Of a DNA stretch of 64,000 nt, positions 9,232 to 17,689 are shown piece after piece. The position numbers were made by a program, and so were the translations under genes. The notes below the pieces were generated by a model. The model searched no databases. It was not told the DNA's origin and worked only from the letters and a program-made list of their open reading frames with translations. Origin of the DNA: Hyaloraphidium curvatum SAG 235-1 (Eukaryota > Fungi > Monoblepharomycota); assembly GCA_025558095.1 (NCBI GenBank), contig JAIVFI010000018.1, positions 62,001-126,000 of the forward strand. The letters are read 5' to 3'. Position 1 is the first letter of the stretch; each line of letters begins with the position of its first letter.

Positions 9232-9690
9232 TGCTGCGCGCGAGTTCTCGCCCAGTGAGTCAAAAGGGTCGTTGCCCGGGTCAACAACCAATGTCCGACT
9301 CGGCACCGCCTCACCGACTCACTCGTCACCCGCTAACTCGAAGTGCACCCGGCCATCGAAAAGCAGGTAGCAGCGGTGTCATCATCCTTTACCTTCGGCT
9401 CCGTTCGAACGTTTCAACTGGATACGGCTACAGCGTTGCTCGCGGCCTCACCCTGGAAGCTAGAAGACGAAGAAGAAGCCTGCCCTGCGACCTACACATC
9501 CCAGCGCGGGACTCATCCATCATGAGCACCCTTCGGATGCTACACGCATAGGGCCGGGCCGCCGCGAGCCCTCGAATCCAGGCACCGCGGCAAGCCCTTG
9601 CCCCCCAAAGTCCGCGGTTTCCGAAGACGCGACCGGCACTCCGTGTTTCCCTCCAGCTGCCTTTTCCTTGTGCGCGCCCGCACCAGAACA

Positions 9691-10059
9691 ATGCTCCACC
9701 CCGTCTCCTCCGTCCTCGTCGGCCTCGTGGGCCTCGAGCACGCATATATCTTGTACTTGGAGATGTTCGCGTGGACGCGTCCCCGCACCCTCAAGATCTT
9801 CGGCACGAGTCCGGACCTCGCCGCGCGTACCGGTTCCATGGCCGCCAACCAGGGCCTGTACAACGGATTCCTGGCCGCGGGGCTCTTCTGGAGCATTCTG
9901 CACCCCAACAAGGACTTTGGCCGGCAGCTGGCGTGGTTCTTCTGCGGGTGCGTGGGGGTCGCGGCGGTCTACGGGGCGGCGACGGTCAAAGCGAGTATTC
10001 TGAGGCTGCAGGGAGGACCGGCGGCGCTGGCGATGGTCTCGCTGCTGCTGCTGAAGTGA
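9691..10059 (+). CDS. DUF1304 family small membrane protein
   Basis: LVGLEHAYILYLEMFAW...MAANQGLYNGFLAAGL...QGGPA signature; intronless. Confidence 0.88.
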   Translation: MLHPVSSVLVGLVGLEHAYILYLEMFAWTRPRTLKIFGTSPDLAARTGSMAANQGLYNGFLAAGLFWSILHPNKDFGRQLAWFFCGCVGVAAVYGAATVKASILRLQGGPAALAMVSLLLLK

Positions 10060-10212
10060 GAGCCAGTCGGACAGCGCTGGCATTGCGTCTCGCGGTTTAC
10101 GTGAGGGAGCAACGGACGATCTGGTGGAATGGTATGGATAAGCCGACAGGCAGTATTCGACTTTGTATCTTGTTCCGGGGACAGAGAATCGTGAAACACG
10201 GCTTCGCGTCGG

Positions 10213-10929
10213 CTATCGCCTCCGCGCCCGAAACAGCCAGAGATCCTCCCCGCCCTTGAAGTCCTCGTGCTGATCTTCCTCCTTGACGTGGGAAAACGGG
10301 AACTCCTGCCCGAGGAGGTGGAAGAATCGCGCCTCGACCTCGAGATCCCTCCTCTCGTAGGCCAGGAACACGGCAGTCCTCCGTCCCGCGGTCCCGGCCC
10401 CGGCCGGCGTTGATACCGCAACGAGTGTCTCCATCAGCGGCTCGAACAAGTCCGGCCAATGAACAACGTCGCTAAGGAGCACCACGTCGTAAGGCGGCTC
10501 CAAACCGCCGGCCCGCAGGGCGTCCAGGTGGTCCTTTCCCCACGGCAGCTCAGCAACCTTCACGTTCTCCCCCGCCCGCGTGGCGTTCGCCTTCGCCAGG
10601 TCCACGAACTTGTCTGTCAGCGCGACTTCGGCCCCCGGCCAGAGCCTCTTTGCCACCAGGCCCACCAACCCCGTCCCGCACCCGAGCTCGATCACTTTCT
10701 TCCCGTCTAGCGATTCGGACGCGTTGCCGTCCCGGCAGAGGCGCTCCAAGTACTTGGACAGCACGAGCGCGGAATCCCAGACGGTGGTACCGATCCCGCC
10801 TTCGCCCGAGGCTCGTTGGAGGACCGAGAGGGGAGCCAGGGAGGTGTCATCGAACTCGTATGTATACGGATAGTAGTCCGGGTCGTTGTCGAGCGAAGGC
10901 GAGGCAGCAGAGGACGCGTCGGCGGCCAT
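10213..10929 (-). CDS. METTL21-like protein-lysine methyltransferase (Methyltransf_16)
   Basis: GIGTTVWDSALVLSKYL, VIELGCGTGLVGL, VALTD, LPWG, YDVVLLSDVV, LAYERR. Confidence 0.92.
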   Translation of the reverse strand: MAADASSAASPSLDNDPDYYPYTYEFDDTSLAPLSVLQRASGEGGIGTTVWDSALVLSKYLERLCRDGNASESLDGKKVIELGCGTGLVGLVAKRLWPGAEVALTDKFVDLAKANATRAGENVKVAELPWGKDHLDALRAGGLEPPYDVVLLSDVVHWPDLFEPLMETLVAVSTPAGAGTAGRRTAVFLAYERRDLEVEARFFHLLGQEFPFSHVKEEDQHEDFKGGEDLWLFRARRR

Positions 10930-11067
10930 CGTTGAGTTGGCGTAAACAAAGCGACGCCGCGGACGGTCAGCGTGCCGAACATTTTACGCGTTGGGCTCCG
11001 CACTCGACAGTGGACCGCATCGCTGGCCCTCCGGCCTCCTACATCGCGTGCAATCTCGTTCTTAGTA

Positions 11068-14000
11068 ATGGAGCACGCAGAGAACCAGAGTGACGACATC
11101 CTGAGTCTGGCGCGAGTTGTTGCGGCGCGGGCTTGGGTGCGGCATGGCTGTGCTTCCTGGCCGTCGGCGATCCGGGGAGGCAGGCTCCGCAATGGCGTCT
11201 TCTCAGGCGACCGAGTACCGTAGCTACGGCGGGTTCGGCAACAACGAGCAGTTCCCGACGCGCGGCGCCGGGCTCCAGCCGTACCTCTTGACGAACGGCG
11301 GCGGCTTCGATGAGACGGAGCCCGAGTTCTCCGACGGCCGGGGTGCCGCGTTTGCATCGGCCGTCTCATTCGACCGCGCCTCCAATCGCTCGGTGTTTGT
11401 GCCCGCGGGCTCCGGCCGGCCGCGCACGCTGCCGACCGCGCGATTCCTCTCGAACGCGCTCTTTGCCTTCGGCGCCAACGTTTCGAGGCCCGGCGAGCTG
11501 CCTGCTGCGCCCGACCCGCCCAATTCGCGCCGCATGCTCTCGGACATGGTCACCTACTTCGGGCATCTTCTCTCGGGCGACATCGACCGCGGCATCCCCT
11601 CTGGCGAGTTCCATTTCCCCCTGGGCGCGACTACTCCGGAGCCATGGCCCCTGGCAATCCCCTCGTGCGACCCCGTGTTCGACCCGTTGTGCGCCGGAAC
11701 ACCTCAGCCCGCCGAGATGGCATTCACCCGCAACCTGGCGGTGACGAACGCATCCGACTCGCCCGGGCGCCGCCGGGCGATCAACAGCGTGTCGGCATTT
11801 GTCGACCTGTCGCCGCTCTACGCCGACGATCCCGAATCGGCGGCCTTTCTCCGGCGGGACACCGGCGGCCTCCTGCGCTCGCACGTGATTCCGACGACCT
11901 ACGTCGAGGACGGTGTCTCAACGACCGTCGACGCAGAATTTCCCCCGTTGATCCGCGAGATCGACGGACCGTGGTCGCGCTACAAGGTGCCCCGCGCAGG
12001 CCTCGTGGACCCCGGCGATCTCTTTGCCGTAGGCGCGATGAGTTTCAACGGCGCGATCCCCACCATCTCCCTGGTCACCCTTTTCCACCGGAACCATAAT
12101 CGCCTGGCGCGCCTGCTCTCGCAGGAGAACCCTTCGTGGGACGATGCCACCCTTTTCGAAGAAGCCCGCCGCCGCAACATCGCGCACTACCAGCGAGTCA
12201 CCTTCTTCGAGTACCTCCCCGTGCTCCTGGGCAGCAACGCGCTTCCCCCTTACCAAGGCTACAATGCCTCCCTCGACCCGGGCATTGACTGCTTCTTTGC
12301 TATGGCTACGATGCGCTACGGACACTCGGAAGTCGGCGACTCGGTCCGCATTGTCCCCCCTCGGACTTCGCCGCACCCCGAGCTATCCGTGCCCTTCGTC
12401 CAGCCGGCCTTCCGCCCGCTGTCCCTTCTTGAAACATACGACATTGGTGCGCCCCTACTGGGCGCGGCGGTAACGGTGCAGCGGGACGTGGACATCTACT
12501 ACTCCGACTCGCTCCGGAGCAAGGTGTGGGACCACCCCAACCGCGGCGGGAGGGACGAGGCGGCGATCGACATCGAACGCGGGAGGGACTGCGGATGCGG
12601 GAACTACCTCAACGCCCGGCGGGCGCTGGGTCTGCCTGTCCCGGCCGCGTTTGCCGAGGTCGCCGAGGATCCTGCGCTCGCTGAGCGCATGGCCGAGGCC
12701 TACGGTGGCAGGCTGGAGCTGCTGGATGCTCTGGTCGGTGCGTACGCAGAGCCAAAGGTGAACGGGGGCAACCTCGGCGCGACGTTCTTCGAGTCGCTTG
12801 TGAGGCAATTTGCCCGCCTGAGGGACGGGGACAGGTTCTACTACCTAGCGGACGAAGCGGGCTTCACGGACTTGGAGAGGGCCGAGATCGGGAACGTGAC
12901 GTTGCGCAAGCTGGTGCTGCTCAACTCGCCTGGCCTGGCGGAGGTGGACGTGCCGCGGGACCTGTGGCACGCGAGGTCGTCCGGCGGACTGGCCGCCGAC
13001 GACGGGGCCGATCCTCTCGCCGCGCGGTACACCAACGTCGTGCGCCTGACACCCGACTATACAATCTACTGGCGGATCGACGGGCGCTCGATCGCGGTCG
13101 CGCAGAAGCTGGCGAGTACGAGTGGCTGGGCTGGGTTGGCGTTCGCCGCGGGGATAGGACAGCTCATGCCGGGCGCCGACTTTGTCGTGGCTTCCAGGGA
13201 CGGGGTCAGTGGGAACGCGTCGGTGAGGCAGTACACCGCCAACCCGAAAGGATTCGACCGGCCTGTGGAACGGGATGATTCAGCGGTCAGGGTGGTCAAT
13301 GTTCAGGTCGGGAGCGACGGCCGATCGACGCTCTTCGAGTGGACTCGGCCGCTCGATACGGGCCAGCCCGGCGCCCAGGTGCTCGCTCGTGGCGCGCGGC
13401 AGCTGCTTTTTGCGTACGATACGTCCCAACCGGGGTTGACCTACCATGGAGCCAGCCGCGGCGCCTTCGTCGTCGATCTGTTTGACACGAGGGCGACGGC
13501 AGTGCTTGCCGCCCCGAGCAGTGTGGCAGTAGCTACGAGGACGGTGCACGGGATCGGAATGATTCTCGTCTTCGGAATCGTCTACCCGGCCGCAATCTAC
13601 ATCGCGCGCTACACGCGGCACACGGACTACTGGCTCAACCTCCACACCACGGCACAGACATTCGGCGGGGTGTCGTTCGTTGCACTGGGCACGGCAGCGG
13701 CAGCGACCGTTTCGGCAGTCGCGGTGACGAACCATGCCATAGGTGGGTTTGCGCGGCCCTGCTTGCTTTGTTCCTCCTGACGTTTCTCCTCCCAAGTCGG
13801 CATAACAATTTTCTCGCTCGTGGTGGTACAGCTTCTCCTCGGCTTCCTTGCTCGCCTCGGTCTCTCCAAGCGGTTCCAGGGCTATGCGTACCTCCGCATG
13901 GGGCACAGAGTGTTTGGTGCCTGCATCCTTCTACTCGGCTGGGCCAACATCCAGCTCGGCCTTCAGCAGCAGTGGCCGTCGACGGGCTGGATCGGCAACA

Positions 14001-15550
14001 TCGTCGTTGGGGCCTGGCAAGCTCTGCTGGCGACGCTGTTTCTCCTTACGGAGCTCGGTTGGCGCGGTATCGTACCTTTTCCGATGCCTGACGAGGTCCT
14101 GGGACCGGTGGTGGGCAAGGTCAGAAGATGGCTCTCTGGAGTCTTCGGTGGTGAGGCGCCCGAGAAAGAGGTCGCGGCGAAAGTGGTGGAGGTGCCGATC
14201 TATGGCTGGGCCGACGTAAACCGCCGGGTGGCGGAGGGCGAGGAGTGGGTCGTGATCGCCGGAGGGTGGGTGCTTTCTCCGATATCCAAACGTGAAGCGC
14301 TGAACCTTGTCGCCCTTGAAGAGTCTACGACGTATCCGAATGGAAATCTAGCCATCCTGGCGGCAAGGAGGTGCTGAAGAAGATGATCGGACTGGATGCG
14401 ACGGCCGTGAGTGGCGGCAAGTCGTGAGACCTGACTGAGCCGAGACCTGATCTCTTCTTCCATCGCACAGGAATTCTTCGGCGGCGTCGTCCCCAAGGAC
14501 GTGGAATCACCCGCCGACGACGATTTCGATGCCAACCTCGGCGGCACAAAGGCCCGCCGGCGCTGGCGTCGCGCGCCCACCGCGCCCTTGCTCGATCTAA
14601 ACGCGACAGTGCTCGGCTCGCAGGCGCAGCTTGTCGCCAAGCCCGCGCAGAAGATCGCCGCCGAGTCGCACGCGCACACGCCCTTCGCGGACGGCAAGCT
14701 CGCCTCGCTGCTCGTCGGTCGACTGGCCCGGAGCACGACGGAAAAGATAGCCGGGGGCTCGTCGGGGATGCAGGACGAGTTCAGGCGCTTCGTCGTCGCG
14801 GCCAAGGGCGAGTCGGCGCGGGGAAACACGGCAAGGAGGTTCACTCTAGTGCCGGTCGTGCCGCGATCGGGCGATGCGGCCGAGTTCCTACCGGGCCAGG
14901 CGGTTGAGATTCGGGCGCGGATCAAGAAGCGCATGGTGATCAGGTTGGAGCCGCCCCTTGAGAAGTGTTTTGCTTCTGCTGATGGTGGCCGCGATCGCAG
15001 GTCGTACACCCCGATCTCCGGGAACATGGTCGACGGCTTTGACATTGCCGTCAAGATCAAGCCCCGCGGACAGATGACCCCGTTCCTGGACTCGCTCGCG
15101 GTCGGCAAGGCCGTCGTGGAGGTCCGCGGCCCCACCGGCACGGTCGTGCTCGACGCCGACAGCCCGGACGGGTGCTACGACCACCTCCTGATGGTCGCCG
15201 GCGGGAGCGGGATCACGCCGATGGTGCAGCTGGCGCACTGGCACGCGCATCGGGCGTCGGCGCACGATCGGGGGCCCCTGCAGCGGCTGATCTACTACAA
15301 CCGGACCGAGGCCGAGGCGATGGAGCTCCCGGATCTGCGGAGGCTTTCCGATTTGACGGAGAGGAGGTTCGTCATGGAGCTCGAGGAGGGCGAGCCGGTG
15401 CAGGAGCAGCTTGCCGAGGGGGTTGCCGAGATCACGCTGGCGGAGGGGAGCAAGAAGATTGCGGTATGCGGGCCGGCAGGCTTTTGCTCGGCCGTTGAAG
15501 GCCTGCTCGGACACTTGGGAGTGCCCGAGGACCTGATCTATGTCATCTGA
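11068..15550 (+). CDS. Multidomain fusion: heme peroxidase-like + DOMON + cytochrome b561 + cytochrome b5 + FAD/NAD(P)H (cytochrome b5 reductase-like) domains
   Basis: Peroxidase: EYRSYGGFGNN, AINSVSAFVDLSPLY, FHRNHNRLA, RYGHS, IERGRDCG, RLRDGDRFYY. DOMON: GWAGLAF..MPGADFVV..YHG. b561: HGIGM, LHTTAQ, NHAIVG, GHRVFG. b5: WVVIAGGVYDVSEWKSSHPGG. Reductase: RSYTPIS, VRGPTG, VAGGSGITPM, CGPAGF. Introns 13743-13796, 14266-14321, 14407-14470 and 14944-15000 all preserve frame. Start is uncertain: ATG 11068 with intron 11137-11206, or ATG 11192. Confidence 0.88.
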
Positions 15551-15619: not shown

Positions 15620-17689
15620 TCACCCCGCCATCGCCGCAGCCCACACGCCCCACGTCCCCATCCCCACCCCCGCCAGCAACATCGCCCATCCAAAGGCCCT
15701 GTCCATCCTCCCCGCGTGCGGAAACATCCGGAGGTAGCACGCGCAAGGGAACACTAAGGCGGTCGGCGTCGCCAGCGCCGAGCCGAGCAGCGCCGCGGCG
15801 CGCAGGAAAGACGGGAGGAGGTACGACAGTAGAAGCACGACGAGGAGCAGTGCGATGCGGAGGGGGATGCGGAAGGGGCGGGGGAGCGTGGCCGGTTGCG
15901 GCGGGGCGATCGGGATGGGGATGGGGAACGGAGAGGGCGGGCGCAGGAGCGGTGTGCGCTCGCTGCTGTTTGCCGGGGTGGGGAAGTTCGATTGCCGGAT
16001 AGCGGAGGAGGGGGTGTGAAAGGATGCGAGGGGCGATCGCCGCGCGAACGGCTCGTCCTCCGAGTCCGAAGAGATCGACCCATTGTCCTGCTCGATCGCG
16101 ACCTCCGGTACCGCCTGCGACTCCGGCATCTCCGCGGAAGGCGTATCCATCGGCCGTCCGAAGAAGGCCGGCAGACGGGGCGACCACCTGTCAGCGATCG
16201 CCGCCGGGCTCGGCGCCCTCGGCCTCTCCACCCCCTGTCCCGCGGCCTCCTTCTCCCCCTTCCACCCCTCGACCATCCTCGCCACCGCCCCCTCCGCCAT
16301 CCGTCCGACGACCTCCATCACCACCCCGACCTTGCTCACGGGGTTGGCCGCCCAGACCCCCGCGATCGCGGCGGCGACCCAGCGGGGGTACCGCCCTTGG
16401 CCCGCCATCCGCGCGATGTTGCCCGTGACCTCGGCTTCCGAGTGGTCGCCAAACATCAGGTACCCTGCTGCGCCGAATGCCAGGTAGGTCGCGGCCACGA
16501 GGGCGTACGAGAGCGCGACGGCGGCGCCGAAGCGGGATTCGTCGCGCATCTCGCGCTTCAGGGAGGGGAGCACGATGTGACCCGCGAGGGAGGCCATGGC
16601 GATGCCGTAGGTGAGCGGGAGGGCGGATGGGAAGGTGTGGGAGACGAGGTGCGTGGGTGAGGGACGGAGGATGGAGCCGGTGGGGTCCGGCAGGGGGGAT
16701 TGCGCTGGGAGGAAGCCGAGGGTGAAGAGGGTGACGAGGAGGAAGATGATCGAGAGCAGGCCTGTGGGAGGATCCAGATGCAAACACGATCAACCATAAC
16801 CTATGTGATCGCGGGCATGCTGTCACCCACCGAAAGCGGCGACGTAGCTGAGGTACCGCATGCTACCCACGAAAGTGAGGGGCGCGACGACGACCCCGAT
16901 CACAACGTATAGCCAAAGGCTTCCCGCCGCCGACGGCAGGAGCGAAGCTACTGAGTCCGCGCACACGATCAGGTACGTCACCGAAACCACCAGGAGATCC
17001 AGCGCCACAACGCACCCCACCGCCACCTCCCCCCACCTCCCGAACGCCGCCCTGCCCACGTCCGCATAGGTCATTATCCTTGTCCCGTCCCCCGCCTCCG
17101 CGTCCATGCAGGCCGCGAGCATCCCCGCCGTCCGCACCGTCGCGAAGCACACGGCTAGCAGCGTCGTCGCGCCGGGGATCCAGCCGACCTGGGCGATGGC
17201 GCGGGGGAGGGCGAGGATGCCGATGCCGACCAGCATGTTGGAGGTGTTTGCAACGGTGTGGCCGAACGAGGAGAGGTGTGGGGACGAGGGGGGCGTTGCT
17301 TCGGAGCCGACCGACTCCTCGTCCGAGGGCGGTGAGAGGGTACGGGACGGGACGGCGGCGTGCGGCTTGATCGGCGAGCCCTCGGGGCTTCCGCGCGGCG
17401 TGTCCAGGGCGTGCGCGGGGCGGAAGCCGATTTCGAACGGCGAGCGGGGCGTGCTCGGAGACGCGGCACCGGCGGAAGAAAACGTCGGCTTCGGCATGTT
17501 CATCGATCGTGCGGCTCGTGGCGCAGTTTCGGGCCTCATCTCGGCGGGCGGGCGCGGCACGGGCGTGTGCCCCGATGACGTGGCAGGCGCCGCCGGCGGG
17601 CTGTTCTCCGCCGCCTCCGACCGCGCCGGGCCCTCCTCAGCAGTGTGGAAGGATAACGCTGAGGTCGACCGCGAGAATGGCGATGCCAT
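15620..17689 (-). CDS. Amino acid transporter, AAAP/Aa_trans family (AVT1-like vacuolar type)
   Basis: SSFGHTVANTSNMLVGIGILALPRAIAQVGWIPG, TYADVGRAAFG, LAGHIVLPSLKREM, GYLMFG, FPCACYL. Intron near 16770-16830. Confidence 0.9.

Follow-up and report, generated by a model that had tools for sequence, protein, structure and literature searches.

The window analysed here, a 64,000-nucleotide (nt) stretch of the Hyaloraphidium curvatum SAG 235-1 genome (contig JAIVFI010000018.1, positions 62,001 to 126,000), contains a gene for a six-domain fusion protein in which a peroxidase-fold domain is followed by DOMON, cytochrome b561, cytochrome b5 and a flavin reductase (Table 1). The gene is a 'heme peroxidase' of H. 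curvatum (NCBI protein P0001; 1,391 amino acids, aa), with its coding sequence (CDS) at 11144-15550 on the forward strand; the frame joined from the ATG at 11144 to the stop at 15550 has no internal stop codon and is identical to P0001. One RNA-derived contig of 5.5 kb (run X1) covers 10150-15445 with zero mismatches and omits exactly four GT..AG introns. X1 is the only public run that holds the DNA of this locus, and its RNA nature is a guess, though the contig is spliced. The contig extends through neighbouring genes and is therefore evidence of splicing, not of transcript ends. Searches were made by exon or with P0001.

A first-pass annotation of the window, made from the sequence alone, had proposed four canonical introns joining the exons into one frame of about 1,400 aa and a single polypeptide; the spliced contig, the stop-free frame and P0001 agree with both proposals. 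Its start at 11068 has to be moved, since the ATG there is out of frame and the RNA-supported start is at 11144. Separate genes or an annotation artefact are ruled out by the spliced contig, the stop-free frame and the presence of the same fusion in dozens of sequence clusters.

Table 1. Exons, introns and domains of the fusion gene (window positions; TM, transmembrane helix)
Feature	Position	Strand	Remarks
Upstream open reading frame from ATG 11068	11068..11223	+	51 codons, out of frame, overlaps true start
Exon 1, CDS	11144..13742	+	Met1 to codon 867: short non-hydrophobic leader, peroxidase fold, DOMON, b561 TM1-2
Intron 1	13743..13796	+	54 nt, RNA contig
Exon 2	13797..14265	+	TM3-5, amphipathic helix, b5 start
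Intron 2	14266..14321	+	56 nt, RNA contig
Exon 3	14322..14406	+	85 nt, b5 HPGG motif, His1034 at 14353
Intron 3	14407..14470	+	64 nt, RNA contig
Exon 4	14471..14943	+	b5 insertion, second b5 His, FAD domain start
Intron 4	14944..15000	+	57 nt, stop-free, in frame; interrupts Arg of RSYTP; RNA contig
Exon 5	15001-15550	+	rest of coding sequence through stop codon
Peroxidase-cyclooxygenase-fold domain	11210..12973	+	aa 23-610, PF03098
DOMON	13025..13483	+	aa 628-780, PF03351; heme ligands Met675 (13166), His768 (13445)
Cytochrome b561 core and fifth TM	13520..14062	+	aa 793-955, PF03188; His802/834/864/903
Cytochrome b5	14195..14722	+	aa 1000-1135; ligands His1034 (14353), His1120 (14675)
FAD-binding domain	14765..15148	+	b5-reductase type, RxYTP
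NAD(P)H-binding domain	15170..15550	+	GGSGITP, CGP, stop codon

Domains, ligands and predicted membrane topology

Six Pfam families match P0001 from the N- to the C-terminus, in the order first proposed: An_peroxidase (E-value 3e-86), DOMON (3e-8), Cytochrom_B561 (8e-7), Cyt-b5 (1e-13), FAD_binding_6 (3e-13) and NAD_binding_1 (1e-5). All motifs named in the first-pass annotation were found in the protein. The b5-reductase motifs of the FNR family, RxY(T/S), GxGxxP and CG, are all present, and the best PDB matches of the C-terminal part are NADH-cytochrome b5 reductases and b5. A long low-confidence insertion, typical of the family, precedes the second b5 ligand His1120. No solved structure was found that matches the DOMON-b561 part by sequence.

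An AlphaFold model of residues 23-1135 built with 81 relatives reached a predicted local distance difference test score (pLDDT) of 84 and a predicted template modelling score of 0.69; a run on six sequences gave a pLDDT of 40 and was set aside, so that only the 81-sequence model was used. In the model, a peroxidase fold and a beta-sandwich are accompanied by five long helices in the membrane, one amphipathic helix and the b5 domain, whose insertion has low confidence. Five TM helices are also found by hydropathy. Lysine plus arginine counts are two, five and four in loops 1-2 and 3-4 and after TM5, and zero in both loops 2-3 and 4-5. This distribution of basic residues indicates an N-out, C-in protein, the topology predicted from hydropathy, loop charges and the model together; accepting it, His802 and His864 would hold the outer b561 heme and His834 and His903 the inner one, as in the model of the CYBDOM protein HYP1 (PMC10784544). 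The odd helix number and the loop charges thus agree with the earlier placement of peroxidase and DOMON outside and of b5 and reductase in the cytosol, but the signal peptide that this layout needs is absent from this copy, a point that the first-pass annotation did not flag.

The peroxidase-fold domain and the protein family

The ectodomain finds its best sequence and structure matches in DdPoxA and bacterial family-6-type peroxidases (PDB 6ERC, 8S6C; E 1.7e-54), and the AlphaFold ectodomain compares with DdPoxA at a template modelling score (TM-score) of 0.88 (by target). P0001 shares with these peroxidases the proximal His and Arg (Arg391, His394 at 12323 and Arg479 are retained) and the Cys pair of the first disulfide (Cys175 and Cys183); the proximal Asn has become Asp476, as in 42 out of 64 members, and there are five N-glycosylation sequons. 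The DdPoxA group, however, consists of soluble enzymes with a distal Gln/His/Arg triad and an ester-forming Glu, and all of these residues are replaced in P0001: Gln by His141 (11564), distal His by Gly145 (11576), Arg by Ser300 (12041) and Glu by Gly303, together with the ester Asp by Ser144. The distal motifs accordingly read GHLLSGD and S-F-N-G instead of the active-type G-Q-x-x-D-H-D and R-x-x-E. In the three closest relatives of P0001, too, His replaces the Gln, and the distal His and Arg are missing. Judged by the superfamily sequence signatures (PMC4420034), P0001 is not a classical peroxidase. A cyclooxygenase, alpha-dioxygenase or linoleate diol synthase type was considered and rejected: the proximal RYGH motif lacks the catalytic Tyr, and the matches are far weaker.

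A profile search of 1.84 billion representatives, followed by local domain models, recovered at least 39 six-domain proteins at a strict cut-off and at least 64 clusters (50% identity) that reach at least the FAD domain; these family counts are lower bounds. (Word-indexed searches recover few members, and the family range cannot be deduced from them.) The reductase part was confirmed by Pfam in ten divergent members. Members are found in Chytridiomycota (Cladochytrium, Spizellomyces, Synchytrium, Phlyctochytrium, Boothiomyces and Quaeritorhiza), Monoblepharidomycetes, Mortierella, Blastocladiomycota (Blastocladiella, Sorochytrium and Paraphysoderma) and Glomeromycota (Gigaspora, Acaulospora, Funneliformis, Diversispora, Cetraspora and Entrophospora), and the non-fungal named member is from the green alga Cymbomonas. 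Dikarya and animals are absent from the 30 proteins looked up, which are not a census. Diphylleia, Pyxidicula, Edaphochlamys and Prymnesium have shorter forms made of peroxidase, DOMON and b561. In the ESM Atlas the matching cluster has 179 members, and a separate DOMON/b5/FAD cluster without peroxidase, mostly from ciliates, is a lead. The H. curvatum genome itself has two copies, both with orthologues in the relative SRR26194948; the paralogue P0003 (L006; G000:C13, ~240290-244700; 1,445 aa) has the same architecture and a clear signal peptide.

Motif tables were compiled from per-domain alignments of the 64 clusters recovered, in which gaps at the distal sites are partly due to truncated gene calls or alignment uncertainty. 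The eight heme ligands of DOMON, b561 and b5 are 97-100% conserved: DOMON Met and His in 63 of 63 each; the four b561 His in 62/62, 62/62, 63/63 and 60/62; and the b5 His in 64/64 and 62/64. Conservation extends to the proximal side of the peroxidase domain (His 61/63, the flanking Arg333 equivalent 63/64 and the Arg424 equivalent 61/63). On the distal side, conservation depends on the clade (His 20/47, Arg 27/52), and the ester Asp is essentially absent. Full-length members with an intact triad come from Sorochytrium, Cladochytrium, Spizellomyces and Boothiomyces, and Cymbomonas retains the distal His and Arg; the pocket has decayed in several separate clades. In MPO numbering, the distal helix has a His at position 91 (Gln), 94 (Asp) or 95 (His), or a Glu at position 91, depending on the clade. 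The sequences suggest that the distal pocket has been remodelled repeatedly.

Identity between P0001 and its orthologue is 55% in the peroxidase domain, 55% in DOMON and 54% in the FAD domain. As the proximal residues are fixed and the peroxidase domain is conserved to the same degree as the electron-carrying domains, we infer that heme is still bound there and forms the end of the chain. At the position where an Asp specifies NADH, most members of the family have Ser or Lys, and P0001 is unaligned there; either NADH or NADPH may be the donor.

No paper describing the six-domain architecture was found in searches of non-subscription full texts, in line with the earlier remark that no characterised protein of this kind was known; the breadth of the family shows that the protein is not singular. 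A survey of ferric reductase domain (FRD) proteins includes DOMON-FRE and DUOX, and the b561 form is absent from it; 'animal-like heme peroxidases', unnamed, are noted in Mucoromycota without this architecture (PMC10629195). Databases label the members only as 'heme peroxidase' or hypothetical. The family is apparently uncharacterised, although transmembrane flavocytochromes as a kind are already known.

Proposed electron transfer and terminal reaction

Each part of P0001 has relatives in known systems. The DOMON-b561 part resembles CYBDOM proteins (Arabidopsis HYP1/CRR), in which DOMON Met/His ligands N-terminal to b561 and two b561 His pairs form a three-heme conduit across the membrane (PMC10784544); CYBDOMs, however, use ascorbate as donor and lack the four further domains of P0001, namely the peroxidase, b5 and the FAD and NAD(P)H domains of the reductase. 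The RxYTP, GxGITP and CGP motifs are those of NADH-cytochrome b5 reductase and of the b5/b5-reductase modules of nitrate reductase and CYB5R4, from which P0001 differs in the fusion behind b561 and in the long b5 insertion before the second His. DOMON-ferric reductase fusions of Naegleria and oomycetes likewise place an extracellular DOMON on an NAD(P)H-fed transmembrane chain, but on an FRD core instead of b561, and no b5 or peroxidase domain is described in them (PMC3591440).

The domain order and the ligand set agree with the electron route that had been proposed from the sequence, and a wire from NAD(P)H through FAD, b5, b561 and DOMON to the peroxidase domain very probably follows from this anatomy. 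The protein would then be a transmembrane reductase that is self-sufficient. Cytosolic NAD(P)H would reduce FAD, from which electrons would pass to the b5 heme, the inner and then the outer b561 heme, and the DOMON heme; the chain would end outside the membrane, at the heme held by the peroxidase-fold domain. Occupation of the heme sites, electron flow along them and the reaction at the end are all things that we only infer.

As to that terminal reaction, we tentatively rank first a reading in which the last heme uses up an oxidant instead of producing one. Members with an intact Gln/His/Arg triad would be NAD(P)H:H2O2 oxidoreductases, in which the wire re-reduces Compounds I and II and which act as a peroxide sink at the cell surface that draws its electrons from the cytosol. 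The subfamily of P0001 has lost the distal His/Arg and the ester residues; its putative open, non-covalent heme site (proximal His-Asp, new distal His141) may accept peroxide, a quinone or a metal chelate. The potential of Compounds I and II is about +1 V. Plant b561/DOMON proteins have heme potentials of -29 to +190 mV (PMC12723747), and the Fe(III)/Fe(II) potential of DdPoxA is -276 mV, becoming more negative with fewer ester bonds (PMC5787809). On these values the reduction of the resting ferric heme, or of O2 to superoxide, would be uphill, and that of Compound I or II strongly downhill; the wire would be suited to Compounds I and II, quinones and ferric chelates, and a sink is therefore ranked above a DUOX-like source. 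Among the extracellular activities first suggested for the protein, generation of reactive oxygen species (ROS) is thus less favoured and reduction of an oxidant (peroxide, quinone or chelate) more so.

Several observations weigh against a sink. The potentials used are those of proteins from plants and an amoeba. Loss of the distal His and Arg, which are needed for efficient Compound I formation, makes classical peroxide reduction doubtful for this copy. Moreover, a 790-residue ectodomain requires a signal peptide, and the RNA-supported N-terminus of P0001 has none: leader hydropathy (a proxy, not SignalP) is 0.19, compared with 1.7-3.9 in the other 25 of the 26 family members with intact N-termini, among them P0002 (the orthologue) and P0003 (the paralogue). 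Either the contig lacks a minor 5' splice form, or the leader has recently been lost in this copy.

Other starts were considered. An intron at 11137-11206 would restore the frame from 11068, but it is not seen in the contig and the resulting leader is weak (hydropathy 1.55); none of the other GT-AG introns from that ATG yields a good leader. The third frame of window positions 11097-11206 has a signal-like hydrophobic stretch (hydropathy 2.05) with no start codon, which a 44-nt intron (11163-11206) would link to the peroxidase domain; it is either a relic leader or chance.

The main competitor, which we consider unlikely, is a DUOX analogue, as the first-pass annotation had termed the protein: the wire would hand its electrons to O2, at the outer b561 heme, the DOMON heme or the open peroxidase heme, and so form superoxide or H2O2, which triad-intact members might then spend on halide oxidation or wall cross-linking. 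The layout is indeed that of DUOX1/2, with one chain holding a peroxidase-fold ectodomain (also a structural match), a di-heme membrane domain and, in the cytosol, an FAD/NAD(P)H domain. DdPoxA, the nearest relative of solved structure, is a peroxidase that halogenates; the open distal pocket with its His-Asp proximal pair could perhaps autoxidise; and AIR12, a DOMON protein, acts with NQR to modulate ROS in the apoplast (PMC12723747). The components, however, differ: P0001 uses b561, DOMON, b5 and FAD_binding_6, whereas DUOX has a ferric-reductase (NOX) core and EF-hands. PF01794 (ferric reductase) and PF08022 (FAD_binding_8) have no Pfam match in P0001, and neither has the EF-hand at E<=0.1; PF01794 does match elsewhere in the genome, which has at least four separate Ferric_reduct (FRE/NOX-type) matches. 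The b561 and DOMON hemes are also of high potential, and P0001 cannot use H2O2 classically. The likeness therefore holds for the layout and fails at the proximal His, which is missing from the peroxidase-homology ectodomain of DUOX (PMC4420034) and present here as His394 and in 61/63 of the family, many members having the whole catalytic triad.

Less probable still is an NAD(P)H-fed ferric/cupric-chelate or quinone reductase of the CYBDOM type, with electrons leaving at the DOMON heme and the peroxidase fold serving as a binding or scaffold module. HYP1 and CRR, two CYBDOMs that have been characterised, reduce Fe(III)/Cu(II) (PMC10784544, PMC12723747), and both the peroxidase-less, mostly ciliate Atlas cluster and the decay of the distal pocket in separate clades fit such a role; but the proximal His and the Arg333 and Arg424 equivalents remain 97-98% conserved, also in members without the distal residues, and a heme-free scaffold needs none of them. 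No metal transporter is found among the flanking genes checked.

It is also conceivable, but improbable, that this copy is mis-targeted or decaying after loss of its signal peptide while the paralogue does the job, which would be compatible with any of the readings for the family. Among the 26 intact N-termini, that of P0001 alone lacks a hydrophobic leader, which P0002 (the orthologue) and the paralogues possess, and G+C content at third codon positions is 0.57 in the leader versus 0.84 in the domain. Against decay, the 4.2-kb frame is intact and spliced with all wire ligands present, the P0001 branch is not longer than that of the orthologue (0.27 vs 0.43), and minor splice forms are lost from contigs. 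Reductive O2 activation of heme-oxygenase or P450 kind, with the wire feeding a non-covalent His-ligated heme for extracellular oxygenation or heme breakdown, is very improbable: loss of the ester-forming residues and of distal His/Arg, with the proximal ligand kept and a dedicated reductase chain fused, would suit it, but the first electron is uphill on the borrowed potentials, there is no substrate clue, and the catalytic Tyr of cyclooxygenase/alpha-dioxygenase is absent (RYGH motif).

The family is a second, independently assembled route to the DUOX layout, in arbuscular mycorrhizal fungi, chytrids and their relatives, and a green alga. The peroxidase domain of DUOX no longer has its heme ligand, and what it does is obscure; the new family still has the ligand, and its members include natural variants both with the distal triad and without it, so that the role of a peroxidase fold at the end of such a wire becomes directly testable. 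A surface peroxide sink or reductase supplied from the cytosol may matter for the way in which early fungi, symbiotic and parasitic, cope with metals and with the oxidative bursts of their hosts.

Other peroxidase-DOMON fusions and neighbouring genes

The peroxidase-DOMON pair is also found on the seven-TM domain (7tm_3) of class C G protein-coupled receptors (GPCRs; P0091 in L007, P0118, and P0130 in L008) and on adenylate/guanylate cyclases (P0114 and P0138), and these fusions retain the proximal His and the DOMON Met and His. Peroxidase and DOMON thus travel together as a unit, which suggests a use in redox sensing, the GPCR forms being candidate redox or peroxide receptors. Taken together, it is quite possible, though we would not put it higher, that the family represents a wholly undescribed eukaryotic enzyme class: an MPO-fold heme would be the end acceptor of a single-chain wire of seven cofactors (counted as FAD, up to five cytochrome hemes and the peroxidase heme), triad-intact members would reduce extracellular peroxide, derived members such as P0001 would carry out reductive chemistry of a new kind, and class C GPCRs and nucleotide cyclases would have adopted the two-heme peroxidase-DOMON unit as an ectodomain that senses redox state.

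Other arrangements were observed. In P0139 (Prymnesium parvum) peroxidase-DOMON-b561 is followed by TIR_2. P0026 (Arcella) and P0038 are giant proteins with 12 and at least 15 tandem DOMONs before b561 (P0038 also has b5), that is, long extracellular heme arrays.

No synteny was found with the locus of the orthologue (L004) among the genes called there. In the window, a DUF1304 gene (+) and a Methyltransf_16 gene (-) lie upstream of the fusion gene at 9598-10929, the start of the latter being 215 nt from the fusion ATG. Downstream, an Aa_trans amino-acid transporter gene at 15620-17689 (-) converges on the 3' end of the fusion gene.

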